From Schizochytrium sp. TIO01 (taxonomy: Eukaryota > Protista > Bigyra: Labyrinthulomycetes): a stretch of DNA of 64,000 bases. The notes under the pieces were generated by a model. It was not told where the DNA came from. It searched no databases and worked only from the letters and a program-made list of their open reading frames with translations. The stretch spans positions 310,001 through 374,000 of the forward strand of contig SMSO01000008.1 in assembly GCA_004764695.1 (NCBI GenBank), read 5' to 3'. Positions 10,665 to 61,661 of the stretch are shown here, one piece after another; positions within the stretch are counted from its first letter, which is position 1; every line of letters starts with the position of its first letter. Made by a program: the position numbers and the translations under genes.

Positions 10665-12581
10665 ATGGACTCTGTGTGGGGTGAGGAGGATGACCTGGTG
10701 CTAGCTGAGCTGGCCGAACTGGACGCCCTTATCTCTGGTAACCCAATCTCTGCCGTTGACTCAGATGCCTCTTCATCGGCAGCTGGGAGCGGCGCAGGTG
10801 GTAGCTTCGTCAAGGTTGAGCACACTCAGGACCCCAACAGCGCCTCTGCTTTGAGAGCGACTCGCGTTGGAGTAAATGGAGGAGTTCGAGCATGCCCCGG
10901 CGAAAACCCAGCGTCCAACTTCGGTATTGGATCAAGTCATGGTTACGATGTTGACCTCGACCCAGTAACTGGTAGTAGCCATAGAACGATTCTACACCAG
11001 AATTCTGCACCAACGGAGCGTGAAAATACAAGTCTTGCACGTGGGAAAACAAAGAATACGCAAACTCCTCCGCCTGCCAAGAAGAGCACAAGTACTGCAG
11101 AACCAGGGCCCAAATCAGTTTCAAAAGCAGCTCTAGCAGCATCAGGTTCTGATGCTGATTCCTTTGGAGTCGATGTAAAGAAGTCGAAAGCTAGTGTGGG
11201 CAATTATGATGATGATGATGACGATGATGATGATGACGATGAAGATGACGATGAAGACCAGGGCTCGAAGAAGAAGAAGAAAACGAAGCAGCCAAGTGCG
11301 GATGCCAAGGCTCGTAGACGTAACACAAATGCAGAGGCGTCTAGGCGTAGTCGACTCAAGCGCAAGGCAGTGATGGAGAAGCTTCGTGAACGAAATGATG
11401 AGCTTGAGCAGGCGCGGAGTCTGTACCTTGAGCGAATTGCAGAACTTCAGCTTGAAGTTTCGACGCTTCGTCATGCAGGAAGCATCGACGTTGCTCGCGA
11501 AAACGAGTTGCTCCGTGCGGAGATCCGGAAACACAAAATGTTTATTTCTAGTATAGTTAGGGCCACTCGTCAAGCACCACAAATGTTACTGGAGGAGCGC
11601 GTACGCTTGCTCAAGAATGGCATTGATAGCACACTTGGCCAAATTGTTGGCCTTATTCATACGTCTACAGATTGGCAAGAACATCACTTTACGTCTCCAG
11701 CGCCTCAGCATGATATCAAGTACCGGTTCACATACCAATTTCTACCTGAAGGAGCGCGCGGGGAGGAAGTGAAGCGGATTAATATGCGTGTTGAAAGCTT
11801 CTTTCTGGACTTGGAGGCAAAGTCCGTAGCAGACGGACTTTGGGATGATAAATTGGCTGAGTCATGGCAAACGAGGAAAACAATGAAAAATTCTGAAATT
11901 GACGGCGTACAGCGAGAGTGGAAGACTTTTTTCTCAGAAGAGTTTGAGGAGGCGCTCAATGAGCTCGGTGAGCATCTTGATATTTCTACTTACGCTGAAG
12001 CGACTGAAAATGAAGATGGTAGTGTAAATAAGATCCGTGCTCTCTTCGCACGGACATATGCATGGCGAAGTCTTGTTCCCTCAGCCTTTTTTGCTACGGC
12101 AGAGTCCTCAGAGATCGACATGAATGAGGTTCGGGAGTCTATTACAGACGGGGTGTCAGCTTGTCCAATTATTGCCACAAGTGAGTTCTCAAAACAATTA
12201 GAAAAGGCACAGATCACTGTGCCACAAGACCATGATAACAACAACGAAGAAATCCGCCGGGTTGATACATCAGTGATGCACGGGCATGTGCTCATTCCAG
12301 CTCTTGATAGCTCAGGGTGTCCTCGAAGCCACCACATAAGTGTCATGTCGCTTCCGGTGGGTTACTTTGCCGGCTCCAAGTCAATCGAGACAGCTGCAAC
12401 GAGCGACGGTGGACTCACAGACTCATTTGCACGATATTTCCTCGATGATTGCCTATTGCTACTGAAAGAAGTCCATTCAGTAGCCTCAAATTCTCTTAAT
12501 CCCCGACCCACATCATATAGCACCCCAGGTTCAAATGGTACCGGAACATCTGGGGACACTGGGCTCGGCTTAACCAATTAG
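10665..12581 (+). CDS. bZIP + conserved C-terminal (START-like) domain protein, paralog A
   Basis: ATG in CACCATGG context (an in-frame ATG at 10551 is an alternative). N-x7-R-x9-L signature NAEASRRSRLKRKAVMEKL (~11328), leucine heptads and ENELLRAEI. Family C-terminal motifs EERVRLL...QIVGLIHTS..W, LP..EVKRINMR and GHVLIP...HISVMSLPVG...DGGLT. Confidence 0.9.
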   Translation: MDSVWGEEDDLVLAELAELDALISGNPISAVDSDASSSAAGSGAGGSFVKVEHTQDPNSASALRATRVGVNGGVRACPGENPASNFGIGSSHGYDVDLDPVTGSSHRTILHQNSAPTERENTSLARGKTKNTQTPPPAKKSTSTAEPGPKSVSKAALAASGSDADSFGVDVKKSKASVGNYDDDDDDDDDDDEDDDEDQGSKKKKKTKQPSADAKARRRNTNAEASRRSRLKRKAVMEKLRERNDELEQARSLYLERIAELQLEVSTLRHAGSIDVARENELLRAEIRKHKMFISSIVRATRQAPQMLLEERVRLLKNGIDSTLGQIVGLIHTSTDWQEHHFTSPAPQHDIKYRFTYQFLPEGARGEEVKRINMRVESFFLDLEAKSVADGLWDDKLAESWQTRKTMKNSEIDGVQREWKTFFSEEFEEALNELGEHLDISTYAEATENEDGSVNKIRALFARTYAWRSLVPSAFFATAESSEIDMNEVRESITDGVSACPIIATSEFSKQLEKAQITVPQDHDNNNEEIRRVDTSVMHGHVLIPALDSSGCPRSHHISVMSLPVGYFAGSKSIETAATSDGGLTDSFARYFLDDCLLLLKEVHSVASNSLNPRPTSYSTPGSNGTGTSGDTGLGLTN

Positions 12582-15219: not shown

Positions 15220-15259
<40 letters not shown>

Positions 15260-15454
15260 TTGGGGATCTTCTCTCAATCTCTCTCTCTCTCTCTCTATCT
15301 TCCGCAGCATTGGGAAGTTCTGCCTGAGACACCCTGCGAGGGTCTCTCCGGAGGCAGCTGGATGGATGCATTGGGGAGGAAACAACATTTGTTAGTTTAT
15401 TTTCCATTTGGGAAAGAAGGGTTTTACTTTGTTGCAAGATTTTGGAATCAATGA

Positions 15455-15500
15455 AAAGTAAAGTAAAGTAAAGTAAAGTAAAGTAAAGTAAAGTAAAGTA
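15455..15500. repeat. (AAAGT)n microsatellite
   Basis: About 9 tandem pentamers, read directly. Confidence 0.9.
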
Positions 15501-20711: not shown

Positions 20712-20845
20712 TCATTCATTCATTCATTCATTCATTCATTCATTCATTCATTCATTCATTCATTCATTCATTCATTCGTTCGTTCGTTCATTCATTCGTT
20801 CGTTCATTCATTCATTCGTTCGTCCATTCATTCATTCGTTCGTTC
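20712..20845. repeat. (TTCA)n/(TTCG)n microsatellite
   Basis: Read directly. Confidence 0.9.
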
Positions 20846-22452: not shown

Positions 22453-23370
22453 TTTATTTAAATTATATTATATTAAAAAAATTAATAAGAATTATAAAGG
22501 GAGTTCGTCTTCTTTGAAAAACAATTTCTTCCTTCAAGTCACAACTTGGGAGGAAGAATTACTAAAATTGAACTGACCATAGGCACTTTGAACCAGATAA
22601 TTTAAATTTAGTTTTTCCTTTCCTTTCCTTTTTTATTTGATTTGTTCTACAACTAAATTGACTTTTAAAAGTACTATTTAAGAAGAAAAAAGGAGCTGAG
22701 TGATGTAGTAAAGTTGATAAGTGAGAAGAAGAGTGAACGCGAGAGAGATAAAAAGAAAAACCTCCGCGTGCCGCAAAGCCGGAACTGTCCCGAGGCGGAC
22801 TCTACGCGAGCGGCAGCAACGGAGGACCTGTTAGGCGAGCCAACTACAGTACCATCCTAGTGGATAGCCTCCCCTGGTGCTTGGTTGGTCGTCAGCCAGA
22901 GCCACTTTCCTCAAACTTTCATTCGAACACTGCAAAATTCACACGGTCGACGGTATATACTTGGAGCAGTGGTCACCGGCTTGAACGAAACTTCAACGCG
23001 TGACAAATACTCGCGTTAGGAATATCTCGAAGGGTGTTCATATCCTCATCAGGGAGTTGACGTGTGCACATCCACCTGCCTTTGATTCTTGCAATAATCC
23101 TTGACCTGGAGGACGTGCACGAGCTTGGGAGCATAAAAACGTCTCGAAAAATTGAGCTTCTTTGGTGCAAATCAGTCTATCTTCAAGGAGCGCTGACGCC
23201 CCCTATCCTTCAGGGAGTTTTGCGCGCACATCACAAAGGTCAAGTTCTGCGAGAGTCTTGAAAAATTTCAAGGAACACGAGCATAGACTTTGTAGTATTG
23301 CATAACAAGGACGACGTCGTCCAGATCTCCAAGACCCTTGGCCGGGTTCAACGAGGCCTTCTGCGGTGAT

Positions 23371-24729
23371 ATGGCTAGCTCAGATAGTACTGAATCTGCC
23401 GCAGAATGTGGCCCGGCCAGGGAATCATCTAAAAAGCCACCAAGGAAACGACCTCGCGTGGTGAAACAGGAACCAGAGGAAAGCAACTTTGCATTAAACG
23501 GAATATCGACTAGCTCGCAAAACGATGGGAGCAAGGATGACGATGATGATAACGATGACGATAAAACACCAAGCAAAAATGCAGAGGCTTGTAGACGCAG
23601 TCGTATGAAACGCAAAGCAATGATGGACTACCTACGAAAGCGGAACGAGGAGCTCGAGGAGCAGAGACACATATATCTGGAACGTATCGCAGAGCTGCAA
23701 ATGAGGGTGTCATCCATGCACCACGCACACGGTTATGATATTTCTCGCGAGAACGAGTTACTGCGAATTGAAATTGCAAAGAACAAAGCCTTTGTGGATT
23801 CTATCGTCGCAGCAACTTCGGCAGCACCGCACGTTCTTGTTGAAGAGCGTGTTCGTCTGCTTAGATCAGCAATTGAAGCCAAAGTTGATCAAATTGCAGG
23901 TCTTGTGCACTCTTCAGCAACATGGGTTGACTGCGGTAAATACAAGACGCCGTCGGGATTTACCTTTTCGATGCGCTATCAGACGCTTCCTTACGGTGTT
24001 CCAGTCTCTCAAGCCAAGCGGCTGAGTTGGCGCGTTGAATGGTTCAATGTTCCGATTCACTCTGAGGAGTTTGCAGACCGCTATTGGCGTGCCAAGAAAA
24101 ATATTTGGGAAGCAAAATTCATCGCAGAGGGGAATCGCGATGGTATTTTGCGTCGCCTCACTACCTATGAGCCGGACGAGATCATGGAGGCAATGCAACA
24201 CATTGGCAGCAGCAATCTCTCTTGCCAGAGATATCACGAGACAGAATTTAAGAATGGTGAGGTTTCAAAGAAAACTCTCTCGATGTTATCGTTTGTTCGG
24301 TCTTCTCGCAAGGTCGAACCTAAAGACGTTCTCGGATCTGAGGTTTCGCCACCTCCTCCAAAAGGTTTGGTAAACATGCCACTCTCAGTGTATTCTGACT
24401 TTTTAAAGGAACTTCAGAGCATCGAGCTGCAGCCCACAGACGAGCCAGACTCTATCCTATTGACCTCACCTTTCGAGTCCGGCATTGCGCTTATTCCAGG
24501 CAAGACCAAACCTGACGGAACACCAGTGTGTCATCTTATTGATATTTACTCGATGCCGATGGGTTATTATCACAGCATACTTACAGCCAAAGACCTCGAG
24601 GAGAACAACGGTCAGCTTGTGAAAAAAATGATGTCCACCAACATTGAACTCATGTGGAAACTTGCACTTCAAGATGACGCCTTGCAGGATCCTGCTATGG
24701 CGTATGCGTCTTTGAACTCAGTACCATAA
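23371..24729 (+). CDS. bZIP + C-terminal (START-like) domain protein, paralog B
   Basis: First ATG after the in-frame stop at 23293. NAEACRRSRMKRKAMMDYL (~23578), YLERIAELQ, RENELLRIEI, EERVRLL, GIALIP...CHLIDIYSMPMG. Confidence 0.88.
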   Translation: MASSDSTESAAECGPARESSKKPPRKRPRVVKQEPEESNFALNGISTSSQNDGSKDDDDDNDDDKTPSKNAEACRRSRMKRKAMMDYLRKRNEELEEQRHIYLERIAELQMRVSSMHHAHGYDISRENELLRIEIAKNKAFVDSIVAATSAAPHVLVEERVRLLRSAIEAKVDQIAGLVHSSATWVDCGKYKTPSGFTFSMRYQTLPYGVPVSQAKRLSWRVEWFNVPIHSEEFADRYWRAKKNIWEAKFIAEGNRDGILRRLTTYEPDEIMEAMQHIGSSNLSCQRYHETEFKNGEVSKKTLSMLSFVRSSRKVEPKDVLGSEVSPPPPKGLVNMPLSVYSDFLKELQSIELQPTDEPDSILLTSPFESGIALIPGKTKPDGTPVCHLIDIYSMPMGYYHSILTAKDLEENNGQLVKKMMSTNIELMWKLALQDDALQDPAMAYASLNSVP

Positions 24730-24939
24730 TTATCACTCCACACAGCACCCCAAGAAAACCAATTACAAAGGAAGGCAAAATAATAGACTAGATTATTGTA
24801 CGACCTCGTATGTGCACATTGGCTTTTCCAACAATTGGACAGCTCTGGAATAGCCCCCATCTTTATTTTCTGTAACAAATTAAGGCTTTGCATGAATCAA
24901 ATTTAATATTGTATAATTTTTTAGCTGACTTCTCATTTT

Positions 24940-25860
24940 CTTAGTATCTATAAGAAATTTTGTATTTGTAGAGTAAGTCTGTATAAAGTGGTAAATATGA
25001 GATTCCATCAGTATCATAGATTGCGAGGTAATCTTTGAGGATAAAGAAAATATATTCAGCAGTAAATGTCTGATAGAACATTTCAAAGTTGTTTTCTTCC
25101 TTATCGAAGTATTTATTGAAAAGCCTTCGCCACGATTCGCTAGGAGGTTACATCTTTCTGATCCATCAATTCGTAACCTTTAATGCGAGCAAGAATTTCG
25201 TTGAAGTTAGCTATCTTTTTGGATTCGATGTCTTCAATGACTGTGTCGATGTATTCGTCGAAGTCACCGCCATAGACTACGCGAATGATATTTTTCAAAA
25301 ACTCATCATAATGATCGTGACGAGTGCCAAACTCATTCGTATTGGATGGCGTAGTTTGCCATCTTAAATTTGTGGCAATGTGATCTGGTGGAGCGTGAAG
25401 TGGTAAAATTGAAGTACTTTTGGAAACGGATTCGAAGCAACTATTAATCATGCAATAAACATGGGCTGCAAACTTCAAGTTTAATCCTGTTTCATTAACC
25501 ATAAGGAAATTATCAAGATTTGGAAGTCCTAATTTCTCCTTTGTGTGGTCTTTTGTGATTGCCCAAACCATAATCATAGCTTCAATGTGTTGTAGCTCGC
25601 TTAGAATGGATTGGATACTAACATTTGTTGGCATTCTTTCGTCGTTGTCAATATGTTGGAGATCAGATAATGTATAAAAGATGATATTGAGGATCTCCCA
25701 AAATTCTGCAACTGTTAAATTATGGAGAATAATTTGTGAAAACTGATTTGGAAAGTAGTGTTTGGTTAAAAAGCTTCTCAATGCATGTAGAATGGAATGT
25801 AGTTTGTCTATATCTTTAAGAAGTGCGAGTATTTTGCGGAACCCAGAATCAGACCTTGAT
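24940..25860 (-). pseudogene. Decayed AT-rich gene of unknown origin
   Basis: 213-aa open frame (25140-25781) with no ATG near its 5' end; the frame stays open upstream to a TGA near 25860. After the stop, a shifted frame continues as protein-like sequence (NKYFDKEENNFEMFYQTFTAEYIFFILKDYLAIYDTDG...). Composition is AT-rich, unlike the host genes. Confidence 0.45.
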
Positions 25861-26036
25861 CAGTCGTTTGTTTTTTGAAAATCGCGTAAGTCAAAGGTTG
25901 TGCAGACAGGCAGAGAGATAGAAGAAGAAAGAGACAAGAGAAGAGCTATTCTAATAGAGCTTGACGAGAGACATCATGGGACGAGTTGATGAACCAAAAT
26001 TTGACATTCAACAGACCCGAATCTAACTTTGACAAG

Positions 26037-27399
26037 ATGGATCAGTCGGTTCAAGATTCGATTTATCGATTACCTAGTGTCAGGAATACAGAGCGAGATT
26101 GGATTTCTAATGTTGTTACTTTCATTGAAGATATAGGACCAGTATATGCTTCAGATGCAGAACTCCGTGATGCTCCTATTTTTGTTGCGGAACGCTTCTT
26201 GCGCAATTTGTCTGCTTCTACAGAAGATCCTGAGTATTTTTTGACCCTGAATGACGTTTTTCCCATGACTTTGAAAGACCGTATTGTTTGCCGGCCTTCT
26301 CCAACTTTTGACACTGACTTCCAGTATGTGATTTCCCCTCTGACAGAAGGTTCTTTCGAATCGGTAGAAAGGTTTATTCGTGGTATCTATAATGGCGTTG
26401 GTAGTCCGCAGCTGATGGATCTTGAGACTTTTTTGACGCAATGGGTCACAGACGGATTCTGTTACGCATGGTGTTTTCTAGTTACACATATGGTGTTTGT
26501 TCCAGTTGATTATACTAATGCTAAATCCAAAGTAGGATTCAGAAGAGTATTTGGAGAAGCTTCTGATGAAACTTCTTTGCGTGACAGGTTTGACATCACT
26601 GCCAAAAGTTTTGAACCTACTCTTCTTTTCGATCGATTTGTGAATTTCCAAAAATTGTTCAGGCGAATTTATGGGGCATACTTTGTTGCGCTTCGCTAGT
26701 TTTATTGCTAAATATGATTAAACTCTCATTCGGGAACTTGCTGTCTTTGGCGATCCGATAGAATTTGATGAGGGTGACTCTAGAACATTATCTGAAGCGC
26801 TCATTCCTGTCCGGCTGACTTCACTGATAAGTCCTTACTTTGAGCATGTTGAAATTTTATCGACTAGAATTTCCATTACTTTGGGAAATGCTGTTCCCCC
26901 CCCAAATGTAATTGATATATTGTCTCATTCAGTCCGCAACGATTCAGTTGAAGCTCCATGGTCCTTGTCTCGTTATGCACAAATGGTCATCGTCATAGGT
27001 CAGCATGCTAATGCTCTATTGTACTTGATGCTTTCTCCGCGAAAGAAGCAATTGAGTATTCAATTCACCTCCGTTAGTCTCTTGCAGCGCATTCCTATCG
27101 ATGAAAGTCTTGATCGAGAAATTGAAAACTATGGTAAGGGTAAATGGAAGAGACAAGTGTTAGATGTGAAACAATTGATTCCAACTAGTTCAATAGTTAC
27201 TGGTTTTACATTGAATTATGATTCCTCGAAATTAACCACTATTGAGCGTCGTTTCCTTACCATTTTATTGCAAGTTTGGTTGTTTTATATTGTTCACATT
27301 TTGAATCCTCAAGTCGATGGTGGGAACTTGTTAGAAATGGAAAAGTTGAAAGATGCAAATTTAGATGATTCTGGCCTGCGGTGGTTAAGTTTGAATTGA
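26037..27399 (+). pseudogene. Decayed gene of unknown origin split by a frameshift/stop near 26700-26720
   Basis: The 237-aa ORF ends at 26699. The frame of the 26881-27399 ORF is open back to 26722 (TLIRELAVFGDPIEFDEGDSRTLSEALIP...), which suggests one interrupted gene of roughly 450 aa. No domain recognised. Confidence 0.5.
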
Positions 27400-28590
27400 A
27401 TCGAAAAGATGCTTTAAAAAAGGCGCTTAAATCAGACAGATTTAAGATGCTCTATAGGTTCAGGAAAAGTGCCTTTTCAATACATAGTGAAACAATTCAC
27501 TTTATGAATTCACTAAGATTTAGCTGCTGTTGCTATTGCTATAGCTACTACTGTTCTGCTTATCTTGCTGCTTGGCATAATCATGAATGTCAGCTTTCCA
27601 AAATCAGTTCATCGAGGTTAGCAGTCACCCGCACTAGGCTATGCACACCTACGATAGGGGCCCACCAAAATGCTCAAAGGCTGATGGTCCATAAACAGTT
27701 GACAATGTTGAACCACTCATGCATATATGCATTCGCCCTCCATCCAAGCGCGATTTGATTGGTTTTATGGTCACAAAGTATGCGCAGTGTATTGAGCTCT
27801 TTTGAAGAGTTGGACATACTTAGCTCCTTAATAAAATCACTGTACCCACACCAAGGCTCCTTCTATCTGGGGTTGTAAGTAAGTTGGCAAAACCAGCTGT
27901 TGCCTCCTCCAGGCCAAGTCTCGATGAGCTTTGTCTTCAAAGAAATCAATGCTTTCTCTCTCGAACTCCTCCAGCGAATGGTGTCAGTTTCTGAATTACA
28001 AATGAACAAAAACAATGGACGAAGAATACTTGTTGATTTCGGTAGAATACAGGAGAAAGTGGTAGAATAAATGAACAATTAAATGAACGTGCTTCACAGA
28101 ACACGCAGCAAACCAAATGACACTTTTCTTCTAGTGCGTTTTTTATTGAAGCAAACCTGGTTGACACTTGTCGTGAATAAAGCACGCGTGAGAGAGTGTC
28201 CTTGGCCTGCGGTGAGGCTGTAGGTATTACTGGTAATTTGTTTTCAAGTGGTCCCATACCGTCTTGGTTTGACCTTGTTTTAGTTTTGCCTTGTGAGCAA
28301 ACTCTTGTTCTTTCTATAAAACTATTGTTTTACATAGAAAGGTGCTATATATAAAAATTTGATGTGCTTATGTTACAAAAAGAATTTCAATAAAAGTTCA
28401 TCGCAGCGCCAAAGCGGGATCTCTCTCTCCAAGCAACTGTTGTAGGACATTCTCGCGAGCAGCTTGCTCGCTTGCTGAAGCACTTGCAGATCCTTGCTAG
28501 TCTGTGTGCAACTGGAGTGAGGCATGAGCAAGCAAGGCCCTGCTGCGAACTGTTTATCTTGCAATAGCAGTGGCAAAGGTCTCGGCAACA

Positions 28591-30225
28591 ATGCAGCGGG
28601 AACAGCAACAGCGGGAGCAGCAACAACGACAGCAACGTGCAGCAACGAGCAGCAACGGCAGCAGCAACAGCATCAGCAGTCAGAGCTTTGTTGCGCTAGG
28701 GCAGCCCTGGCCAGCGAAAACATATAATTCATTTACGAGAATGGTGGGCCTGAATGAAGGCGAGATTGGAAAACAGGTCATTGCGGAGATTGAGACAGGC
28801 GTGCACATGCCGGAATACTTCAGGCCTCACGCTGATGATGATGGGGAGCACTCGCACGAGAAACTACAACATACGGGCCTCCAGTCTCTTTTTGCAGGAA
28901 ATCAACCTGAGGCTACAAGCCACGATTCCGACGAGATCAAATGGTCTAAACTCAATGGAGACATCGACGGATTGTTGAGAGCAGATCTTGGCGCCCAAGA
29001 AACTCCTGTATCTTCGAAAGTATCAGATTCGCGCAATGCAGATGCATGCCGTCGTAGTCGGCTTAAGCGAAAAGCTGATATCAAGGACTTAAAACATCGC
29101 AACGCAGAATTAGAGAGACGAAGAGAAATATACTTAGAGCGAATTGCACAGCTTCAAGTGGAGGTTGACGCGCTAAGACATGCTAACTGTATTGACGTCG
29201 CAAAAGAAAATGAACTTCTCCGCGCTGAGATTGAGAGACATAAAATTTTCATCTCGCGCATCATACATGCCATGGATGAGGCACCTAATATGGTTCCTGA
29301 GGAGAGAGTTCGGCTCTTGAAAACAGGTATCGAAAGTGCTCAAAGTCAGGTCATAGGCATGCTCTACACGTCTACTTGTTGGCGGCCCATCTCACCAATC
29401 AAACTAAATGGAGGTGTTGAAATTCTTTTCTATTATCAATTTTTACCTGTAAATGCGGCTCCTCATGAAATAAAGCGATGGAACATGCGCTGCGAGATTT
29501 ATAATATCAATGTCCCGCCAGCTTATTTAAATTCTGAAGCATGGAAGAAATGCGGCGATCTTGAAACCCTTCGAAGGCTAGAGAAAGACCGTTCCAGTCT
29601 CGATGGGGTTCGTCGAACCATCGAACCGTATCTGGCTCCGGCGTTCCAAGAGGCCCGAGATATGCTCCCGGGCCATCTTGAAGCATTCCAAATAACTGAA
29701 AAGCATCCTCTCTCGAAGCGTTTGCCTTCTGGTGTATATCCTCCAGATGCGTCTGTTCTGCGCTTTTGGGTTGCCGCCACAATGCGTGAAAATGAGGTGT
29801 ACCCTCGTTCATTCATATGTGCAGAAGGATCAAGGTCAGATTGTGTGAAAACCATTTCTGCGGAGTTTTCTGATCAGCCTATCAAATGTAAGATTACGAC
29901 CTATACAGAAGTTGGGCGAGCGTTGGTGAGCGCAGGCATTGTTCCTTCGCAAAAGGACGTCCCGAACGTTCGTCATTTAAACTCATCGGCTCTCTCAGGG
30001 CATATCGTCATCCCGTCCAAGCAGGGGGCGTCATGCCATGTAATCTCTGTCGGGTCCGTTCCCATTGGTACTTTGGGTACAATCGGAAAGCCAGAGAATC
30101 TGGTCAATCATGATGGCTCTCTAACGAAATCTTGCTTAGAGCATCTTCGTTTTCGCACCAAGCTTTACTGGGAGGATAGCATAAGAGTTGCGCGTTTGCG
30201 TGCGCAAGACGGCGTATTACAGTAG
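28591..30225 (+). CDS. bZIP + C-terminal (START-like) domain protein, paralog C
   Basis: NADACRRSRLKRKADIKDL (~29035), YLERIAQLQ, KENELLRAEI, EERVRLL, EIKRWNMRCE, GHIVIP...CHVISVGSVPIG...DGSLT. Gln-rich N-terminus. Alternative start at ATG 28741. Confidence 0.88.
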   Translation: MQREQQQREQQQRQQRAATSSNGSSNSISSQSFVALGQPWPAKTYNSFTRMVGLNEGEIGKQVIAEIETGVHMPEYFRPHADDDGEHSHEKLQHTGLQSLFAGNQPEATSHDSDEIKWSKLNGDIDGLLRADLGAQETPVSSKVSDSRNADACRRSRLKRKADIKDLKHRNAELERRREIYLERIAQLQVEVDALRHANCIDVAKENELLRAEIERHKIFISRIIHAMDEAPNMVPEERVRLLKTGIESAQSQVIGMLYTSTCWRPISPIKLNGGVEILFYYQFLPVNAAPHEIKRWNMRCEIYNINVPPAYLNSEAWKKCGDLETLRRLEKDRSSLDGVRRTIEPYLAPAFQEARDMLPGHLEAFQITEKHPLSKRLPSGVYPPDASVLRFWVAATMRENEVYPRSFICAEGSRSDCVKTISAEFSDQPIKCKITTYTEVGRALVSAGIVPSQKDVPNVRHLNSSALSGHIVIPSKQGASCHVISVGSVPIGTLGTIGKPENLVNHDGSLTKSCLEHLRFRTKLYWEDSIRVARLRAQDGVLQ

Positions 30226-42621: not shown

Positions 42622-44262
42622 ATGGAGGATCTCGACAGCGTATTCGACGATATTGTATCTCTGCCAGAGCTAGGCCTTGATAACCTCTCTTGGCTTCAGG
42701 CTTCTCCGCAACCTCGCGGAACTACAAGTTTTGAAGATGCTGGAGGTGCCAGCTGCTGCTCCGAACAGCCGAATGAATCCTACACGAGAAGTAGCAAAAG
42801 CGAAAGTATTTTCGATGGCAGCAGCAAGACCGGTCACCCTAATACTAGCGGTATCAGCAGCAGCAGCAGCAGTAGCAGCAGCGATAGCAGCAGTAGCTTT
42901 TATAATGGTTGCAACAGCTCCAATAGTAATAATATCGTACTAAATGGCTGCTTTGGCAATGTCTTCTCAACTTCAGAAATAGATTCACAGCAGCTCCCAG
43001 TAAGTGTCTTAGCGTCAGAATTACCGCGGAGAAATAGGAATAAGTCGTGTGCTAAAGCATCTGTGACACCGCTGCAATCCTTGTCCAAACCAAACTCAAG
43101 CACCGCGTCATACTTGAACAAACGCAACGCAGAGGCTTGTCGACGCAACAGACTCAAACGAAGGGCCGAGGAGGAATTTCTTCGTAATCGTAACGAGGAA
43201 CTGCAGCAAAATCGCGCTCTTTATATGCAACGAATTGCAGATCTGCAAAATCAGGTAGATGTCCTATGCATGGGTGCAGACACTATTGACTTAAGAAAGG
43301 AGAACGAGTTCCTGAAGGCTGAGATAGTACAACAAAAGGCATACCTAGATGGAATGGTCAAAGCTATCAGAAGACACCCATCTATTTTACCAGAGGAACG
43401 AGCAAGGTTACTGAGGTCTTGTTTAGAAAACTCTGTAGCATACGTGGTTGGACTGGCCCATTTATCTACTTCGTGGAGACATATTTATTCTGCTCAATTT
43501 GAGAAGTTTTCTATGAACTCGCACTACGATACGTTGCCGAGAAATGTTCCGCTTGGTGAAGTACGAAGAATCAACATCCGATCGGAATTTGTAAATGTTC
43601 CTGTTTCAGCTTCAAAATTTCATGAAATTATGATATCTATGTGGAACGATAGAAACCGGGCATCTAGGCTTTCAGCAGCCCTTAAAAGAACCTCCCACTG
43701 GGATTGGCGTGTAGACCCATTGAGCTCCCCAGAACTTGACGAATCTATCTCAAATATGCCCCCAGATGAGAAGGTATGTATATCTCGCTGTCTAGAAATT
43801 CAGGAAGGTACTTATGAACACAAGACAACAATGTCTGCATATTCAACGAAAAAAGACCTTATTCCACGTGCAATTTTCAGACAGGATGGGGATGGAGATA
43901 TAGCAGACGGGTGTACAGCCACTTCCCATTTGGCTGATCAACATGTTTCAGCATATATCCATGCGATGACAAACTGCGATGCGGAACTGGAACAAGCCCA
44001 AATCCCCACAGGAATCAAGGGTCACTTCAAGTTTACCTCTGGGCATGTCGCTATCCCAGACCAAAATGATCCGAACACATGTCATGTGGTTGCTATTGTT
44101 TCTATTCCAGTTGGGGAATTTCAAACTGTTCGTTCGCCTTATGACATGATCACAGAAGAAGGAACTCTCACTGAATCATATGCGCGACTTTATCACGCTC
44201 AGGTTGAGTACTTTTTGGAAGAGGTTTCAGGTTTGTGCGAGGCAACTGCAGTTGAATATTGA
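42622..44262 (+). CDS. bZIP + C-terminal (START-like) domain protein, paralog G
   Basis: 546-aa ATG ORF with an AGC-encoded poly-Ser tract. NAEACRRNRLKRRAEEEFL (~43126), LPRNVPLGEVRRINIRSE, GHVAIPDQNDPNTCHVVAIVSIPVG. Confidence 0.9.
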   Translation: MEDLDSVFDDIVSLPELGLDNLSWLQASPQPRGTTSFEDAGGASCCSEQPNESYTRSSKSESIFDGSSKTGHPNTSGISSSSSSSSSDSSSSFYNGCNSSNSNNIVLNGCFGNVFSTSEIDSQQLPVSVLASELPRRNRNKSCAKASVTPLQSLSKPNSSTASYLNKRNAEACRRNRLKRRAEEEFLRNRNEELQQNRALYMQRIADLQNQVDVLCMGADTIDLRKENEFLKAEIVQQKAYLDGMVKAIRRHPSILPEERARLLRSCLENSVAYVVGLAHLSTSWRHIYSAQFEKFSMNSHYDTLPRNVPLGEVRRINIRSEFVNVPVSASKFHEIMISMWNDRNRASRLSAALKRTSHWDWRVDPLSSPELDESISNMPPDEKVCISRCLEIQEGTYEHKTTMSAYSTKKDLIPRAIFRQDGDGDIADGCTATSHLADQHVSAYIHAMTNCDAELEQAQIPTGIKGHFKFTSGHVAIPDQNDPNTCHVVAIVSIPVGEFQTVRSPYDMITEEGTLTESYARLYHAQVEYFLEEVSGLCEATAVEY

Positions 44263-45175
44263 CAATGGCTTGGTGATTTTTGACTGAAGGTGTCGCTTCC
44301 CTTGCCTGTTTGATCTAATGATGTTTGGTTATCGTCTCCTTCTCCATCTCGTCGTAGTAGTATTTCTGCGGTATGGTTTGCACGGATTCGTCCCAACGTT
44401 CTTGATCTCTTCAGATGGAGAGGATTTGACTTGCAAGATAATCAAAGAAATGAATATGAGGGTCTCATCTTAAGAGTCCGCTCACAGGGCAGTGGCCGCC
44501 CTAGCAACATTTACTTAAGCTCCTGCGATACGCTTTCTAAGATTCTGTCATAAGAGCAGAAATTGAGTTATGTATTCTATCACCATGAGCGATGGTAAAA
44601 TTTGTATGCATTGTTAAAAAATAAATACGGATAGAAGGTTTCAAAATTGCACCCGTTAGTTTCTTCTTCAAGTTTCTTCTCTCAAGAAGTATTTGAGAAC
44701 CAGCAATCATTTTAATACTTGGTCTGCCCACCCAAGGACAAAAGACCGTCTCAAGACAGATTTTCTACCCCTCGCGCAAAACCAATATCCAACAAAGCAA
44801 ATATCCTTTGCTACACATTCCTCGCCACATCGACCTAAATAGTTGAAGTCTACAAGAACTCCAGCATGCTCCAGCGCACAGCACCTCGAATTTGGTGTAA
44901 TGCAGTAGATAGCTAAGCTACCTGCCTCTAGCTAGTAGAAATGTACTCTCAAACACCGCTGACTGCAGCAATGTTTATATATATGTACAGGGTTACAAGG
45001 ACTAGTAGTAATACCCCTACTTCTTGCTATTCTTAAGAACATGTCCAACCTTTCCCTACGTTCTTGGTATCTACTCCTATGGTGACCTCGAACCTCTCAA
45101 TTACGATGAAAAGAAGTTTGCTTGTGTCTCACCAAACTCCAATGCTGCGGGCGCCGTGGTGCGTGCAAAGCCACC

Positions 45176-46729
45176 ATGGATGCGCTGGATGAGCTTTGGG
45201 AACCCGATCTGGGGTTTGAGGACCTCGCGTGGCTGCGTGCAGCGCCACAGGCCCGGTCCGAGCCCCGCGTGAGCGTCGGGAGATCATGTATTCGGATCCA
45301 GGCTGATGACGACTACGATGAGGATCACATGTACGAACAAAACAAAGTTCAAGGCGCCGCGTTCTCAGGCAATAGAGAATATGGAAGTTTTCCGATGTTT
45401 CGTGTCGACGCCCATATGCGTGGCAATGAAGTTACGTTTAATGGTCGTTTTGGAGATGTTTTCGTGTCCGCTCAAGGTGAAGTGCCAAGGTACAGGCCGA
45501 CAACACTTGCCGAGAGAGCTGAGGCTGTACAAAGGAAACGTCTCGAAGTAACACAAACACCAGAACCTATGGGAGTTAATATACGTAATGCAGAGGCATG
45601 CCGCAAAAATAGGCTCAAGCGGAAAGCAGATGAGGAGAACTTGCGAAAACGGAACGAAGAGCTTGAGGAGAACCGTGGTTTCTTTTTGGAACGAATCGCC
45701 GAACTGCAATACCAGGTCGACGCCTTGCAAATGGCAGGATCTATTGACTTACGTAAGGAGAATGAACTTTTGAGGATTGAGATCAGCAAGCACAAGGCTT
45801 ACTTAGATGATATGGTCAAGGCTGTCAAGAGACACCCGAAAATTTTGCTAGAGGAACGTGCGAGATTGCTTAAGACATGCCTTGATAATTCTGTAGCACA
45901 CGTGGTTGGACTTGCGCATCGGTCTACATCATGGCGCCATTTGCATACAACACGGCGTGGAGAGTTCAGTATGCGCACGCATTATGACGTGTACCCGAAA
46001 AATGTGCCGTTCGGTGAGATCAAAAGAATTAATATTCGCTCGGAGCTATTGAACGCGCCTGCACCTGCTGGAGTTTTTCATAAGTTTGTCAGAACTATGT
46101 GGCAGGACAAAGAGAGAATACGCAAATTCAAGGAGGCCATGTCGTCCCTGAACGATGTAGACTGGGAAATTGATGAATTCAGATCGCCAGAGCTTGACGA
46201 GACACTTTCTTGTTTTCCGCCTGAAGACCAGGTTCAATTGGCTTTATGTACCGAAATGGAAAACAACATCGTGCGTTTGAAAACGACTATGTCAGCGTGC
46301 ACAGCCCACCAAAATCTGGTTCCACAAGCACTCTTTGCAAATGACGACTCAGATCCTGAGAGAGAAAGGACCCTATCAAATATGCCAGATGTTGCTATTC
46401 CAGTTCATATCTATACCGTGACAAATTGTGACGAAGAGCTGGCGCAAGCGAAGATCATTACTGGGCATAGTTCCTCTGAACGGTTTAAGGTCACAAACGG
46501 TCATGTTGTTCTGCCAAATGAGAAGGATCCTAATTCATGTCATGTAGTAGCTGTCTCATCTATTCCGATCGGACACTTCCTACCGCTGCGTACGCCGCAT
46601 GATATGATGACAGATGACGGGGTTCTGACTGAGAAGTATATCAATATGCTGAACGCACAGCTCGAGTTTCTAGCTGAAGAGGCTACTGCCTTCTGTGAAG
46701 CAACTGTGTACGCCACAAGCCTTGAATAA
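45176..46729 (+). CDS. bZIP + C-terminal (START-like) domain protein, paralog H
   Basis: ATG in GCCACCATGG context, with an N-terminus homologous to F and G. NAEACRKNRLKRKADEENL (~45587), GHVVLPNEKDPNSCHVVAVSSIPIG. Confidence 0.9.
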   Translation: MDALDELWEPDLGFEDLAWLRAAPQARSEPRVSVGRSCIRIQADDDYDEDHMYEQNKVQGAAFSGNREYGSFPMFRVDAHMRGNEVTFNGRFGDVFVSAQGEVPRYRPTTLAERAEAVQRKRLEVTQTPEPMGVNIRNAEACRKNRLKRKADEENLRKRNEELEENRGFFLERIAELQYQVDALQMAGSIDLRKENELLRIEISKHKAYLDDMVKAVKRHPKILLEERARLLKTCLDNSVAHVVGLAHRSTSWRHLHTTRRGEFSMRTHYDVYPKNVPFGEIKRINIRSELLNAPAPAGVFHKFVRTMWQDKERIRKFKEAMSSLNDVDWEIDEFRSPELDETLSCFPPEDQVQLALCTEMENNIVRLKTTMSACTAHQNLVPQALFANDDSDPERERTLSNMPDVAIPVHIYTVTNCDEELAQAKIITGHSSSERFKVTNGHVVLPNEKDPNSCHVVAVSSIPIGHFLPLRTPHDMMTDDGVLTEKYINMLNAQLEFLAEEATAFCEATVYATSLE

Positions 46730-47418: not shown

Positions 47419-48731
47419 CGTTGAATTTTTCTTATCTACATCGCTGGCGTATGGACCTCATCTCGTCATTTCTAGTAGCCAAAACATTCAGTGCTTGCAT
47501 ACAGATGGCCAAGTCTCTTTACCTCAAACATGAAAGCGTGTGCATATGACAGACACGTTCGAGCTTGTCTCTATGCTTGCGACAGCTTGATGAAACTACT
47601 CGCGTTACTTAGCGCGAGGTCGAAAACATCGAGTCTCAATACAAGAGCTTGTTCAGTTCAGTCTAGTAATGACATTGCTCCTCTCAATGGCACCGCAGAC
47701 GGTCTATCTATGTCCACCCGAGCTCGTCATCAACGTGAGCAGAGCATTCCATGCAAACAACTCGAACTAGGAGGAACAAGCATGAGAGTGCGAGATTTTT
47801 TTTTGTACCTTTATTTAGGGCCGCCGAGCGCGTGCACAACCACGTGCGAATTCATTCAACCCGTTCTCTTCCGTGCATTCTCCTGCAGCTGATTCTAGTG
47901 GGCAGGCAGGCACATACATGAGATCATCTCGTCACCCCCCCCCCCAAAAGAGCTCTTGTCGCACCTCCAGCTCGCTGCCCACCATCCACTCCAGCTTTGC
48001 CATCGCCCAATCCACCACCAACTTAGTCCAAACTTTCTACTACAGCTCACAGCCTGTACAGTGTGCGCCCTTACGACATACCTAACCTAAACCATAGCAC
48101 TCGGCCTTCATCTGTTGCATCCTTCGTAGCTCCTACCGTTGTCCATAGCCATACTGACTAGCAGTCACCTTAGCACTTGGCTACCTGTGACTAGCCCAAC
48201 TGGGAGATTCATGGGTACTATCTATGAGTACCCAAACTGGGTACCGATGGGAGCGAGAGGAGCCACTTAGCTACCGCGGTCCCTGAACGCTAAGAAAGAG
48301 GAAAGACCTTTGATGAGAATGAATGATTCAATCAATCAATGTCAATGAATGAATGAATGAATGAATGAATGATCGATTGATTGAATGAAGGAATGAAGGA
48401 CTGAATGAATGATTCAACCTATGAATGTCAATGAATGAATGAATGAATGATTCAATCAATTAATGTCAATGAATGAATGAATGAATAAATGGAATGAATG
48501 AAGGAGCCAATCCACCCCTGCCTCTTCAAGAAGGGCGTGAGGAAAGCCATAGGCCAGGCAAGGAGCTGGGGCAGCGCCCGTCGCGTGGCCCTGTCTGTGC
48601 CAGCTTCCCGGCAGAGGCCCGTGCTGAGGAGCGTGCACAGGTCTTGGCACTAGGTAGTAGAAGGAGTTCACTTCTTCTTCTTCTTCTTCTTCTTCGATTC
48701 TCATTGATGTCACGGTATGAATGTCATTTGA

Positions 48732-51903: not shown

Positions 51904-52036
<133 letters not shown>

Positions 52037-52425: not shown

Positions 52426-52671
52426 AAACAAACAAACAAACAAACAAACAAACAAACAAACAAACAAACAAACAAACAAACAAACAAACAAACAAACAAA
52501 CAAACAAACAAACAAACAAACAAACAAACAAACAAACAAACAAACAAACAAACAAATAAACAAACAAACAAACAAACAAACAAACAAACAAACAAACAAA
52601 CAAACAAACAAACAAACAAACAAACAAACAAACAAACAAACAAACAAACAAATAAACAAACAAACAAACAA
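52426..52671. repeat. (AAAC)n microsatellite, ~61 units
   Basis: Read directly; two AAAT variants at ~52557 and ~52653. Confidence 0.95.
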
Positions 52672-54805: not shown

Positions 54806-54826
54806 GAGAAGAGAAGAGAAGAGAAG

Positions 54827-54913
<87 letters not shown>

Positions 54914-54916
54914 AAA
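54806..54916. repeat. (GAGAA)n + (AAAG)n compound microsatellite
   Basis: Read directly. Confidence 0.95.
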
Positions 54917-56516: not shown

Positions 56517-58721
56517 ATGAGTTGGGTGGGAACCTCGCGCGCGGCGGAGCTAACGCCGCGGCGCGTGATGATCCCCGGGTCAAGGTCGTGCCGCGGCGGC
56601 GCCGCGGACGGCTTCCTGGTGCCGGATGCCGTGCCTCTTGGAGCCTCATCGGCCGGCCGAAGGACGCCCGCGCTGGCGGCGAACACCTTGACGAACGGCA
56701 ATAACGAGGAGGAGAAGGAGCGCCAAGGCGGAAACAACGACGAAGTGGAGCGCGCTGACCACAGGGCTCCGGAAAGTGGTTTCAATGGCGGCGCAGGGAC
56801 TGACCCTCAGCGCTATTACCATCAAGGGGGAAACAGCAAACCTGTCAATGGTAATGGCCGCGTCTCCAAGACCAGGTTTGGCGAGCTGATGAATATTGAT
56901 GGTCGTGAACTTGGAGATGGAGGAGAAGAAGCTCGCGAGCTGGGACTCTACAGCAGCGACTTGAAAGATAATCGCACTGAAGGTTTCCAACGTAACAGTA
57001 TTGACGGCATGAAGTTCAAAGTCAGCAATATGGCCACGATCGGGAGCGACTACTGGAGCAGGGGCATGGCTGGGCAAGGTCTCGGTTATAATGCCCTTAT
57101 AAATAATCGCATGAACTCAAGTTATTCGAACGCGGCATACTGCGGAGGCATGATACCTGGAGAAATCGCAAGCTCAGTAGCGGAATCTCGTAAAAGGCCT
57201 CGACCACCAACACTTGGAAACAGGCACTTCTCAGGGGAAGAAGCTGGGTTTGATTCAACAGTGGCCGGGAGTGTAGGTTCAACTGGTTTCGCAGGGTCCA
57301 GAGGCGTTTCTGAGGAGAGCTTTGCACCCCAAATTGTGCGAAGAGCAATAAAGAAAAAATCAATCCCACTTACAAAGAAATCCACTCTGGCTTCGCAATC
57401 CACACATCATCGTAAACGCAAGCTGGAAGATCAGCAAAAGGTTACTCGTGAAGAGGAAGAGAGAGAAGAAGGCGAGGATGACGACGACGACAACGACAAC
57501 GACAACGAGGATGGCGACGGCGACGGTGAGGAAGATGACACGCATACCATAAACTCTGTGTCAAGAAAAGTAAAGCAAGAGCGACTCGTGAACCGACGCA
57601 ACGCTGAGGCCTGCCGAAGGCAGCGTCAAAAACGCAAGGCAAATGAAGACAACTTACGAAGACAACACCGTGAATTAGAGGCAAGCAGAGAGCTTTTTTT
57701 GAAAAGGATTGCCGAGCTCCAGTTCGAGGTGGACACCTTATGTATGGCGGACAGTATTGATTTGCGTAAAGAGAATGAACTTTTGCGCATGGAGATTGCG
57801 AAACACAAAGAATTTATCCAGGAACTTGTGGACACTGTGCATAGGCAGCCATCTGTTCTCATGGAAGAGCAGGTTCGCGTGCTCAAGGGCGTCGCAGACA
57901 GAGCCGTCTCACAAGTGGTTGGCATGGTTCATACATCTGCTAACTGGCGCAAAGTGCACGTGATTCGTCACGAGAGTATGCTAGAAATGCATATTTATTG
58001 TGAATTGCTGCCTCGCAAAGTACCCATAAACGAGGTCAAGCGCATCAACATGCGCTGTGAGGTGCTTTTTGCACCCGCTTCATCACAAACGCTGCATCGG
58101 GTGCTTGCGTCCGAGTGGGCAAGTGGCGAAATTATGCAGAGTTTTTGTGCGCCTTGGCTCGTCCCCCCTGGTCCTGCATGGGCTGTGTCCAGTCTCAACT
58201 CCCGGCAAGTCAATCACGCCATGATGGCACTGGCCAAAGATAAACTTCGCGTTTATTCTTGGGAAGAACAAACTCATGGGCAAATTACTTTCAAAGCAAG
58301 CCTTGCATCATGTACTGCAGCACGTGAGCTTGTTCCTTCAGCTTTTATGGTACAACATGATGAACATGAACGACGTGACCAAGCCCTTGCCTTTGTTGAT
58401 GAAGGCCTTGTTCCGTGCCGCGTTCACGCTGCAATGACTTGCGATGAAGCTCTGGCAAAAGCAGACATCAAGACGCTCTCTTCCTCCAAATCAAAATGTA
58501 TTTATGGCTATACAATTGTACCTACAACCACGAACCCAGCTTCGGCACACATTATTACTGTTTCATCTTTGCCAGTCGGCGAGTTCTCCAAACTCAGAAA
58601 AACGAGCGATATGTTCTCAGAAGATGGATCTTTGACGGAAACCTTTGTTCGCGTCTTTCAAACACAGCTTGATTTCTTTGCAAACGTCCAACAACCATGT
58701 GCTGATCCAAGGTTTGTATGA
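56517..58721 (+). CDS. bZIP + C-terminal (START-like) domain protein, paralog I (long N-terminus)
   Basis: First ATG of the open frame; the true start is uncertain. NAEACRRQRQKRKANEDNL (~57600), MADSIDLRKENELL, LPRKVPINEVKRINMRCE, GYTIVP...AHIITVSSLPVG...DGSLT. Confidence 0.85.
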   Translation: MSWVGTSRAAELTPRRVMIPGSRSCRGGAADGFLVPDAVPLGASSAGRRTPALAANTLTNGNNEEEKERQGGNNDEVERADHRAPESGFNGGAGTDPQRYYHQGGNSKPVNGNGRVSKTRFGELMNIDGRELGDGGEEARELGLYSSDLKDNRTEGFQRNSIDGMKFKVSNMATIGSDYWSRGMAGQGLGYNALINNRMNSSYSNAAYCGGMIPGEIASSVAESRKRPRPPTLGNRHFSGEEAGFDSTVAGSVGSTGFAGSRGVSEESFAPQIVRRAIKKKSIPLTKKSTLASQSTHHRKRKLEDQQKVTREEEEREEGEDDDDDNDNDNEDGDGDGEEDDTHTINSVSRKVKQERLVNRRNAEACRRQRQKRKANEDNLRRQHRELEASRELFLKRIAELQFEVDTLCMADSIDLRKENELLRMEIAKHKEFIQELVDTVHRQPSVLMEEQVRVLKGVADRAVSQVVGMVHTSANWRKVHVIRHESMLEMHIYCELLPRKVPINEVKRINMRCEVLFAPASSQTLHRVLASEWASGEIMQSFCAPWLVPPGPAWAVSSLNSRQVNHAMMALAKDKLRVYSWEEQTHGQITFKASLASCTAARELVPSAFMVQHDEHERRDQALAFVDEGLVPCRVHAAMTCDEALAKADIKTLSSSKSKCIYGYTIVPTTTNPASAHIITVSSLPVGEFSKLRKTSDMFSEDGSLTETFVRVFQTQLDFFANVQQPCADPRFV

Positions 58722-60107: not shown

Positions 60108-61661
60108 TCAAATATTTTCAGTTTCTGCAAATCCCATGATTACATCGGCAAAAATCTCGAATTGGCCCACTATTGAACGAGCGAACTCCTTCGTCAGGTC
60201 GCCACTGTCAGAGACAATGTCAAAAGACCCACTCAAAGACTCAAACTCGCCAGATGGAAACGAGAATGCCATAATAGCGTTTGATTGATTCACATCTATC
60301 TTGGACGGGACACAGACGTGTCCATAAACCATTTTGCCTTGCAAAATGTTCTCCGATTCCACTTTTGCAAACTCAAGGTCTTCGTCGCTGGATACGCTTG
60401 CATACATTTTGCATGGTACGACTCCATCATCTACGCTTGCGCAAATCTCATCTCGAAGAAAAGGATCATCGCCAGATGCGATAAAAGATCGAGGAACTAA
60501 GTCTCGCGTTGAGATGCAGGATGTAAAAGTGAATTCAACCACTGTATTATCTTTGTTGACCTCCTGCCCTCTCAGGAAGTAGACTTGCTCGTCAACAAGA
60601 GCTTCAGTAGCTTCCTGGATCTCAGGACTAATGACAGGTTCCATTCGAAGTTCGTGCGAATCAGATGACGCCAGGGCACTATAAAAGCTTCCCATCTTTT
60701 CAGGATCTGTCCAACACGATGTCAGAGCCAGGTGAAGTGCGTTGTCCGAGAGTGGGGCGCCAAGAATCTCATAGCGAATGTTCATACGCTTGACCTCACG
60801 TAGAGGAACACCTCGCGGCAGAAACTGTAAGCACATATTCATTACCATGCCCGATGGGTGTTGTACTGTGTAGTGACGAGTCCATTGCGAGGATGTGTAG
60901 ATCATACCAACAACCTGTGAGGTGGCTGAGTCAATGACATTCTTAAGCATACGAACTCGCTCGGACAGAACAAGGCTTGAAGACTTTTCGATGGATTTGG
61001 TAATGTTGGTCAAATAAGCTTTGTGCTTCGAGATTTCGACACGAAGCAACTGATTCTCCTTTTCCAGGTTGATCGACCCAGACATGCGTAGTGATTCAAC
61101 TTCTTGCTGGAGCTCAGCAATACGTTTGAGATAGAGTGGTCTCTTGCTTTCAAGCTCCTGGTTGCGGGTCTCGAGCGCTTCACGTTCAGCTTTCCGTTTC
61201 GCTCTGCGGCGTCTGCATTTAACCGCATTTTTACCCATGTCAGGCCCATCTTTAGGCGCAGTTTCACCTTGGCTCGATGCCTTGGAGGTAGCTCCGGTAG
61301 TCGCTGATTTAGACAGAGCTTTAGGGGTTTCTCGAGATTTGTTTTCATCATTTTCGGAGGATTCCTCTTGAGATCTTGAGCCTCGATCATCAGACGTCAG
61401 CGTCGCGGTGACACTGTCAGAGTTGCAAGCACGCCTTTCAACCTCATTATCAGAAGCGCCAGAGATGTTCGCAGGGTTGCCGGGAGCTGTAGCATTCTCT
61501 GCATCGTTATCGTCGTCCTCCACATTCCCGTCTTCCTCAGCAAGATCCAGGTCGAGCCATGGGTCTTCGTTGTCACCAATAGCGGCTTCCAGTTGATTGC
61601 CACTCAAGAGAAAGATATCCACGAGGTCCGAACTGAAGATGTTCACATCGTCGGATTCCAT
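60108..61661 (-). CDS. bZIP + C-terminal (START-like) domain protein, paralog J (inverted, divergent basic region)
   Basis: 517-aa ATG ORF. NAVKCRRRRAKRKAEREAL, YLKRIAELQ, KENQLLRVEI, LPRGVPLREVKRMNIRYE, GHVCVP...FSFPSG...SGDLT. Confidence 0.9.
   Translation of the reverse strand: MESDDVNIFSSDLVDIFLLSGNQLEAAIGDNEDPWLDLDLAEEDGNVEDDDNDAENATAPGNPANISGASDNEVERRACNSDSVTATLTSDDRGSRSQEESSENDENKSRETPKALSKSATTGATSKASSQGETAPKDGPDMGKNAVKCRRRRAKRKAEREALETRNQELESKRPLYLKRIAELQQEVESLRMSGSINLEKENQLLRVEISKHKAYLTNITKSIEKSSSLVLSERVRMLKNVIDSATSQVVGMIYTSSQWTRHYTVQHPSGMVMNMCLQFLPRGVPLREVKRMNIRYEILGAPLSDNALHLALTSCWTDPEKMGSFYSALASSDSHELRMEPVISPEIQEATEALVDEQVYFLRGQEVNKDNTVVEFTFTSCISTRDLVPRSFIASGDDPFLRDEICASVDDGVVPCKMYASVSSDEDLEFAKVESENILQGKMVYGHVCVPSKIDVNQSNAIMAFSFPSGEFESLSGSFDIVSDSGDLTKEFARSIVGQFEIFADVIMGFAETENI

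Follow-up and report, generated by a model that had tools for sequence, protein, structure and literature searches.

Gene content and organisation of the array

The 64,000-nt stretch of the Schizochytrium sp. TIO01 genome analysed here (the window) corresponds to positions 310001-374000 of contig SMSO01000008.1, designated C7; other contigs of the genome assembly are numbered in the same manner. It contains ten uninterrupted open reading frames (ORFs) of one family, nine on the plus strand (z01-z09) and one on the minus strand (z10), encoding proteins with a basic leucine zipper (bZIP) followed by a C-terminal domain for which a START fold is predicted. The array extends past the window to approximately C7:405.6 kb and comprises 15 intact genes in about 85 kb, so the count of ten reflects the window edge, which leaves five genes outside. 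In our view there is a reasonable probability that these genes form a segment of a 15-gene bZIP-START array coding for lipid-sensing dimeric transcription factors. An earlier note on this DNA had described ten intact ORFs of a single architecture; this was confirmed by the ORF calls, by an alignment of the ten proteins and by a tblastn search of the window, although the array itself turned out to be larger. In this search the ten proteins together matched these ten sites only, with no fragments or broken copies, and thus the window is free of decayed copies. The sole decayed copy seen in the array is located outside the window (C7:399337-399645); it matches the zipper and the second helix and contains one TGA and one TAG codon.

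The first four genes are z01 (10665-12581; the ORF opens at 10491 and has an alternative ATG at 10551), z02 (23371-24729; ORF 23338-24729), z03 (28591-30225; ORF 28570-30225) and z04 (35045-36451). The bZIP is encoded at 11319-11480 in z01, 29026-29187 in z03 and 35297-35458 in z04, and the C-terminal module at 11481-12578, 29188-30222 and 35459-36448, respectively. They are followed by four genes of a lineage-specific clade: z05 (37618-39147; ORF 37612-39147; bZIP 38014-38175, C-terminal module 38176-39144), z06 (40093-41649; ORF 40090-41649), z07 (42622-44262; bZIP 43117-43281, C-terminal module 43282-44259) and z08 (45176-46729; ORF 45122-46729; bZIP 45578-45739, C-terminal module 45740-46726). 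Gene z09 (56517-58721; ORF from 56397; bZIP 57591-57752, C-terminal module 57753-58718) encodes a protein with a long N-terminus, and z10 (60108-61661; bZIP 61077-61238, C-terminal module 60111-61076) is the only copy on the minus strand.

Open frames of at least 110 amino acids in the intergenic gaps of the window had no Pfam match. The statement of the earlier note that no other clearly intact gene lies among the copies therefore holds as far as it is testable: there is no recognisable gene between the array genes, although genes of types without a Pfam family are possible. The gap between z02 and z03 (24730-28569) consists of rearranged pieces of a dispersed repeat, which recur with 84-90% identity at ten or more other loci; elsewhere these pieces span about 12-13 kb, for example at C7:823-836 kb, C35:483-496 kb and C13:3.251-3.264 Mb. 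No Pfam family matched the three open frames of this gap (225-244 amino acids). The two gaps of approximately 10 kb share with the rest of the genome only short satellites, the units of which recur at many loci, and tetranucleotide microsatellites. Within these two gaps, long microsatellites of this kind (TCAT, GAAT, CAAT, AAAC and AGAA) are found at 20712-20845, 48317-48502, 51905-52035, 52426-52671 and 54807-54915. Upstream of the array, an unrelated ORF of 991 amino acids (504-3479) looks, by eye, like a signalling protein with PDZ-like and RhoGEF-like stretches.

Domain architecture of the encoded proteins

Alignment of all ten proteins reveals a common plan consisting of a variable N-terminus, a basic region, a leucine zipper, a short break containing Gly and Ser, a second helix and a C-terminal domain of about 290 amino acids, with 38 invariant columns. 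The best conserved part is the bZIP, with a mean pairwise identity of 60%, followed by the post-zipper helix (52%), the diversified C-terminal domain (28%) and the N-terminus (16%). The N-termini cannot be aligned and are frequently acidic or of low complexity. A short motif, M-x-D-L/F-D-S/A-L ... P-E/N-L-G ... L-S/A-W-L, is present in the N-termini of z05-z08 (37618-37720, 40093-40200, 42622-42730 and 45176-45270, respectively) and absent from the other copies.

The basic region has the consensus R/K-N-A-E-A-C-R-R-x-R-L-K-R-K-A, and the sequence N-A-[ED/V]-[AK]-[CS]-R-[RK]-x-R-x-K-R-[KR] was found in all ten copies; it includes the Asn, Ala and Arg of the N-x7-R signature of bZIPs and, after them, a K-R-K cluster. 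The zipper consists of five heptads with L, L, F/Y, L and L at the d positions and Asn at one a position. Its first Leu is located 18 residues past the Asn of the basic region in every window copy, which is the register of yeast GCN4. In z06, for example, the basic region and the zipper (40501-40662) contain the sequence N-A-E-A-C-R-R-N-R-L-K-R-K, the first zipper Leu at Asn+18 and L, L, F, L and L at the d positions. They are followed by the post-zipper helix with an E-N-x-x-L motif (40663-40779; helix at residues 4-31 in the model) and by the START-fold domain (40780-41631). The second helix carries the motif E-N-E-L-L-R-x-E-I-x-K-H-K, of which E7, N8 and L11 are invariant both in 27 and in 40 family sequences. 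In the E-N-x-x-L arrangement, Asn would occupy an a and Leu a d position of the heptad, and we infer that the helix may form a second coiled coil, giving a zipper-loop-zipper similar to that of plant class IV homeodomain-leucine zipper (HD-Zip) proteins.

High-confidence structure predictions give the C-terminal domain of about 285 residues the START helix-grip lipid-binding fold. In the models, a curved antiparallel beta-sheet is combined with an N-terminal helix and covered by a long helix at the C-terminus. The complete scaffold, including this long lid helix, was modelled with high confidence in two copies that are only 23% identical, and the top structural matches of the models were lipid-bound START domains, not degenerate SRPBCC proteins. 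The assignment is robust for a prediction of fold, while the sequence signature of the START family is not present. A search of the ESM Atlas gave no usable match. Pfam detected no homeobox, PAS/LOV, transmembrane or other targeting domain in the ten proteins, and no C4 zinc finger or helical-sandwich ligand-binding domain of the nuclear-receptor type.

Age of the copies and selection

Synonymous sites are saturated even between the closest paralogues (proportion of differing synonymous sites 0.76-0.96, of nonsynonymous sites 0.07-0.5), indicating that the duplications are old, yet every reading frame has remained open. This saturation makes the ratio of nonsynonymous to synonymous substitution rates (dN/dS, omega) between paralogues impossible to compute, and alleles were compared instead. 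Contig C11 (1-60536, 60.5 kb) is an allelic haplotig, collinear with the window from 24131 to 64000 and onward at 96-99% identity; the organism is thus heterozygous at the array locus. The haplotypes of z03-z10 differ at 39.5 of 2917 synonymous sites and at 35.5 of 10141 nonsynonymous sites, corresponding to a dS of 0.0135, a dN of 0.0035 and an omega of about 0.26, and the deficit of nonsynonymous differences is significant (binomial p = 5e-9). For single genes, omega was 0.29 for z03 and 0.08 for z06. All alleles of z03-z10 are intact. Substitutions between the haplotypes affect 0.58% of coding and 1.44% of non-coding positions, and indels occupy one coding position versus 255 non-coding ones. 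The copy at C7:390 kb was left out of the comparison because of an indel.

These data support the view that the copies, although old, are individually under purifying selection, as the earlier note had proposed from their divergence and the lack of pseudogenes; the omega of about 0.26 over z03-z10 lies well below the value near 1 that would point to neutral evolution. The bZIP and START-fold architecture is very probably maintained by selection. The arrangement in tandem, the long repeat-bearing spacers and the stop-containing fragment outside the window might suggest an array of redundant or decaying duplicates without individual function. Such an explanation is highly improbable and is contradicted by the selection data, since all ten copies and the alleles have stayed intact despite saturated synonymous sites, and syntenic orthologues of four copies exist in a second genus. 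A different pattern was observed for the copy at C7:385994-388072, the alleles of which differ by no synonymous and 11 nonsynonymous substitutions and by a 12-nt indel, in contrast to the window genes.

Distribution and phylogeny of the family

The genome contains at least 35 intact members of the family, including a second tandem array at C32:2.454-2.470 Mb. In this second cluster, as well as in a copy at 2.528 Mb of the same contig, Val replaces the Asn of the basic region (V-A-A-A-S-R-x-T-R). Another member (C30:8.6388-8.6406 Mb) is split in two overlapping frames, the bZIP half lying in the first and the START half in the second, perhaps through a frameshift, an intron or faulty assembly.

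An exhaustive profile search of 1.84 billion representative proteins retrieved 250 clusters at E <= 1e-3. A bZIP-like region precedes the domain in 133 of 158 retrieved sequences, and most of the others are short or truncated. Named records came from Hondaea fermentalgiana, Mucochytrium quahogii, Aplanochytrium stocchinoi, the MMETSP0958 and MMETSP0960 libraries, which we take to be from Aurantiochytrium limacinum, and two unexpected sources. Judged from these sequences, the family appears almost confined to Labyrinthulomycetes among named records, and its proteins are named "hypothetical" or "BZIP domain-containing" in the databases because the C-terminal domain is invisible to Pfam. The headers of the two MMETSP libraries give TAXON_ID 87120, assigned to a fungus in the NCBI taxonomy, where A. 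limacinum has 87102. The two unexpected records, from Durusdinium trenchii (CAK8989359, from a contig of 9 kb, its gene model containing two bZIP units) and Batrachochytrium salamandrivorans BASA81 (KAH9255822), may represent labyrinthulomycete contamination or mislabelling.

In a FastTree phylogeny of 138 sequences, four window genes had one-to-one orthologues in Hondaea with local support of 99-100%: z01 (FCC1311_094012), z02 (FCC1311_094002), z03 (FCC1311_095252) and z04 (FCC1311_095272). Judged by locus-tag order and apparent shared contigs, the first two orthologues are adjacent, and the other two are one gene apart on another contig. The left part of the array (z01-z04) was therefore in place, in its present gene order, before the two genera separated. 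The remaining window genes (z05-z10) group with six more C7 copies in a clade of 12 members (99% support), to which none of the sequences retrieved from other organisms belongs; by these sequences the clade is a lineage-specific tandem expansion, yet an old one, as indicated by its saturated synonymous sites.

Two members of the family, both located outside the window, have lost the part of the basic region that contacts DNA. The array member at C7:377274-378794 retains K-R-K-A, the zipper and the START-like domain, but an acidic stretch with Pro takes the place of the DNA-contacting half. The other (C31:689212-691020, 602 amino acids) has the zipper and the START-like domain and an acidic stretch instead of the basic region. 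To judge by their sequences, these two proteins could act as inhibitory dimer partners. The C31 gene is located 2.3 kb upstream of an ORF resembling sterol glucosyltransferases (C31:693291-695564), and in Hondaea a START-like part and a glucosyltransferase are joined in one model (GBG24283, "sterol 3-beta-glucosyltransferase", 1320 amino acids). This reflects either conserved adjacency or a merged gene model. The fusion was considered as a clue to a sterol ligand and rejected, since two separate neighbouring ORFs are found here and the Hondaea model may be merged.

Evidence of transcription

A transcript record exists for z04, MMETSP transcript P0008 being 99.6% identical to this gene. Further evidence comes from the assembled contigs of four sequencing runs, putatively of RNA, from four studies. 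In run X14, a contig of 1698 nt (40084-41781) spans the ORF of z06 and is collinear with the genome, showing that this gene is intronless. Another contig of the same run ends 59 nt past the stop codon of z05, and one more starts 344 nt before the ATG of z07, a gene covered by contigs of all four runs. Across the putative RNA runs, contigs stop 46-59 nt past the z05 stop codon and break at or near gene borders. Most of the spacer between z06 and z07 is missing from the contigs of runs X5 and X6, and contig depth differs several-fold between neighbouring array genes. This pattern fits transcripts without being proof of them, and z05-z07 are probably transcribed.

Possible function in lipid-dependent regulation

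The members of the family are likely to function as transcription factors. They would bind DNA as dimers formed through the zipper, and since the copies hardly differ at the a, d, e and g positions of the zipper, both homodimers and heterodimers of paralogues appear feasible. A hydrophobic ligand, such as a fatty acid, sterol, carotenoid or phospholipid, would sit in the START domain, and occupancy of this domain would alter dimerisation, DNA-binding competence, localisation or stability, as has been reported for plant HD-Zip III/IV proteins. With conserved DNA-binding parts and diversified START domains, different lipids could feed into related promoters; the split between 60% identity in the bZIP and 28% in the START domain fits such a convergence of varied inputs on related DNA sites. 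The role of the START domain as a ligand sensor is a tentative proposal with a little less than an even chance of being correct.

Several points have to be set against the reading of these proteins as lipid-sensing, DNA-binding dimers. The library type of the four runs discussed above was only guessed to be RNA, and assembled contigs were available, not raw stranded reads. As for dimerisation, a homodimer prediction for z06 (residues 130-518) scored 0.22 versus a mark of 0.32, which speaks neither for nor against a dimer. The 800 nt preceding each of the ten genes showed no enrichment of the canonical bZIP sites (CRE, AP-1, ACGT-core and G-box) over shuffled sequences; autoregulation by the bZIPs of the array, considered as a possibility, is thus unsupported. 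The same upstream regions share no common 8-mer besides A-rich words. The residue at N+4 of the basic region, usually Ala in bZIP proteins, is Cys in nine of the ten copies and Ser in z01, and at the position of the DNA-contacting Asn many members of the wider family have V, I, M or A, which are commoner than N. DNA specificity, and even DNA binding itself, may therefore be atypical. Seven of the ten copies match Pfam bZIP_1 or bZIP_2 weakly, only z02 exceeding the curated cutoff (bZIP_2, 25.3 versus 22.3 bits), and neither of these families was matched at E <= 1 by z07, z09 or z10.

The weak Pfam scores and the relatives without the Asn might also be expected if the proteins were not transcription factors at all but dimeric coiled-coil proteins of lipid transfer or lipid droplets, with a basic stretch used for membrane binding or nuclear import, and the copies at C7:377 kb and C31:689 kb, which have no basic region, would be in line with such a role. 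It is nevertheless improbable, because the ten window copies keep N, A, R and K-R-K in the GCN4 register with Leu at +18 and at 60% identity, and because Pfam detected neither transmembrane nor targeting domains.

The remaining points against lipid sensing concern the C-terminal domain. In none of the ten proteins do the C-terminal 300 or so amino acids match any Pfam family at E <= 1, START (PF01852) included, and a domain profile built from 27 sequences found no START chain among PDB sequences at E <= 10. The START assignment rests on predicted structures, since no sequence method recognises the domain, and a shared fold, itself predicted, is no proof of ligand binding. The proteins might thus be transcription factors in which the START-like domain is a ligand-free module for dimerisation, cofactor docking or stability, its divergence reflecting partner specificity and not different pockets. 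Fold similarity by itself shows no function, no sequence motif typical of ligand-binding START families is detectable in the domain, and the START domain of plant GL2 reportedly mediates dimerisation and turnover too (bioRxiv 10.1101/2021.11.23.469727). We regard this alternative as rather unlikely, considering that the entire helix-grip scaffold and the lid helix are kept in copies as divergent as those modelled, that lipid-bound START domains and not degenerate SRPBCC proteins are the best structural matches, and that dimerisation and lipid binding coexist in plant HD-Zip factors.

Lipid sensing by DNA-binding dimers is close to what the earlier note had proposed, namely a combinatorial sensor-regulator system analogous to nuclear receptors. 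The structural premises of that proposal were supported: the bZIP spacing is canonical, a START fold is predicted, conserved and diversified parts are distinct, the genes are under purifying selection, and the host, which was expected to be of particular interest if oleaginous, is a thraustochytrid close to A. limacinum. Its functional side, namely ligand sensing, the combinatorics of heterodimers and the likeness to nuclear receptors, is inferred. A broader scheme, in which Labyrinthulomycetes would have independently evolved a nuclear-receptor-like system of dozens of bZIP-START factors per genome, many of them in tandem arrays, with their own diversified lipid pockets, combinatorial dimers formed through near-identical zippers and basic-region-less inhibitors, and in which the fatty-acid, sterol or carotenoid state of oil-accumulating thraustochytrids would be relayed directly to transcription, is speculative and somewhat doubtful.

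Thraustochytrids of the Aurantiochytrium type are industrial producers of docosahexaenoic acid, squalene and carotenoids, and the transcriptional control of their lipid metabolism is poorly known. The genes described here would provide candidate lipid-sensing regulators, and thus concrete and genetically tractable targets, in an oil-producing protist.

Comparison with known systems

To our knowledge, START-bearing transcription factors have so far been treated as a plant invention, represented by the HD-Zip III/IV proteins. If the interpretation of the array is correct, a zipper-type DNA-binding domain would have been joined to START a second time, independently of plants, and lipid-gated transcription would clearly have evolved by convergence; in these heterotrophic stramenopiles the family has grown to 35 or more genes per genome. 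In full-text literature on bZIP and START domains combined with stramenopiles, thraustochytrids, Aurantiochytrium or Schizochytrium, no description of the bZIP-START architecture was found.

Plant HD-Zip III/IV proteins (PHABULOSA, GLABRA2, PDF2) are the closest working precedent and have the same order of modules, a DNA-binding domain, a zipper (zipper-loop-zipper in class IV) and START, and in both cases the family is multi-gene. The order of a zipper, a short loop, a second helix and a START fold in the array proteins makes the likeness one of architecture and not of whole-protein homology. The START domains of the plant proteins are reported to bind phospholipids and to govern dimerisation, DNA-binding competence and the choice of targets (PMC13590234, PMC11564692, bioRxiv 10.1101/2021.10.20.465175 and 10.1101/2021.11.23.469727). 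The proteins of the array differ from them in having a bZIP basic region instead of a homeodomain, a START domain too divergent for PF01852 and no MEKHLA domain, and in their hosts, which are heterotrophic stramenopiles; the literature regards HD-Zip III as specific to plants. Convergence is the most likely source of the resemblance.

Among stramenopiles, the bZIP families of Phytophthora sojae and P. infestans have also expanded in tandem, with the basic-region Asn replaced in many members (PMC4046829), as it is here by V, I, M or A. The view of the earlier note that tandem clusters of transcription factors are uncommon in unicellular eukaryotes needs qualification in the light of the expansions in P. 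sojae (PMC4046829). Oomycete bZIPs reportedly have no extra domain save for one bZIP-PAS protein (PMC4046829), whereas a START fold is the hallmark of the present family. In aureochromes (bZIP-LOV) and oomycete bZIP-PAS factors, which are stramenopile bZIPs as well, the sensor domain is C-terminal to the zipper (PMC13737086; PMC7273347). They resemble the array proteins in combining a small-molecule sensor and an effector in one polypeptide, but their sensor is a flavin-binding LOV/PAS domain, which is absent here, its place being taken by the START fold.

Animal START domains (ACOT11/STARD14, CERT/STARD11, STARD3, StAR, STARD4/5 and PCTP) show 5-12% identity to the domain of the array proteins, which has about 285 residues with extra helices inserted; in animals they are joined to thioesterase, PH or membrane domains, and here to a DNA-binding zipper. 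Nuclear receptors are alike in concept, being paralogous dimeric DNA-binding factors each with a pocket for a lipophilic ligand, but they have no domains in common with the array proteins, so that the likeness is one of analogy only. Tandem bZIPs with altered basic regions in oomycetes, fusions of bZIP with sensor domains and plant START factors are thus already known, and what is new in the present family is their combination and the lineage in which it occurs.

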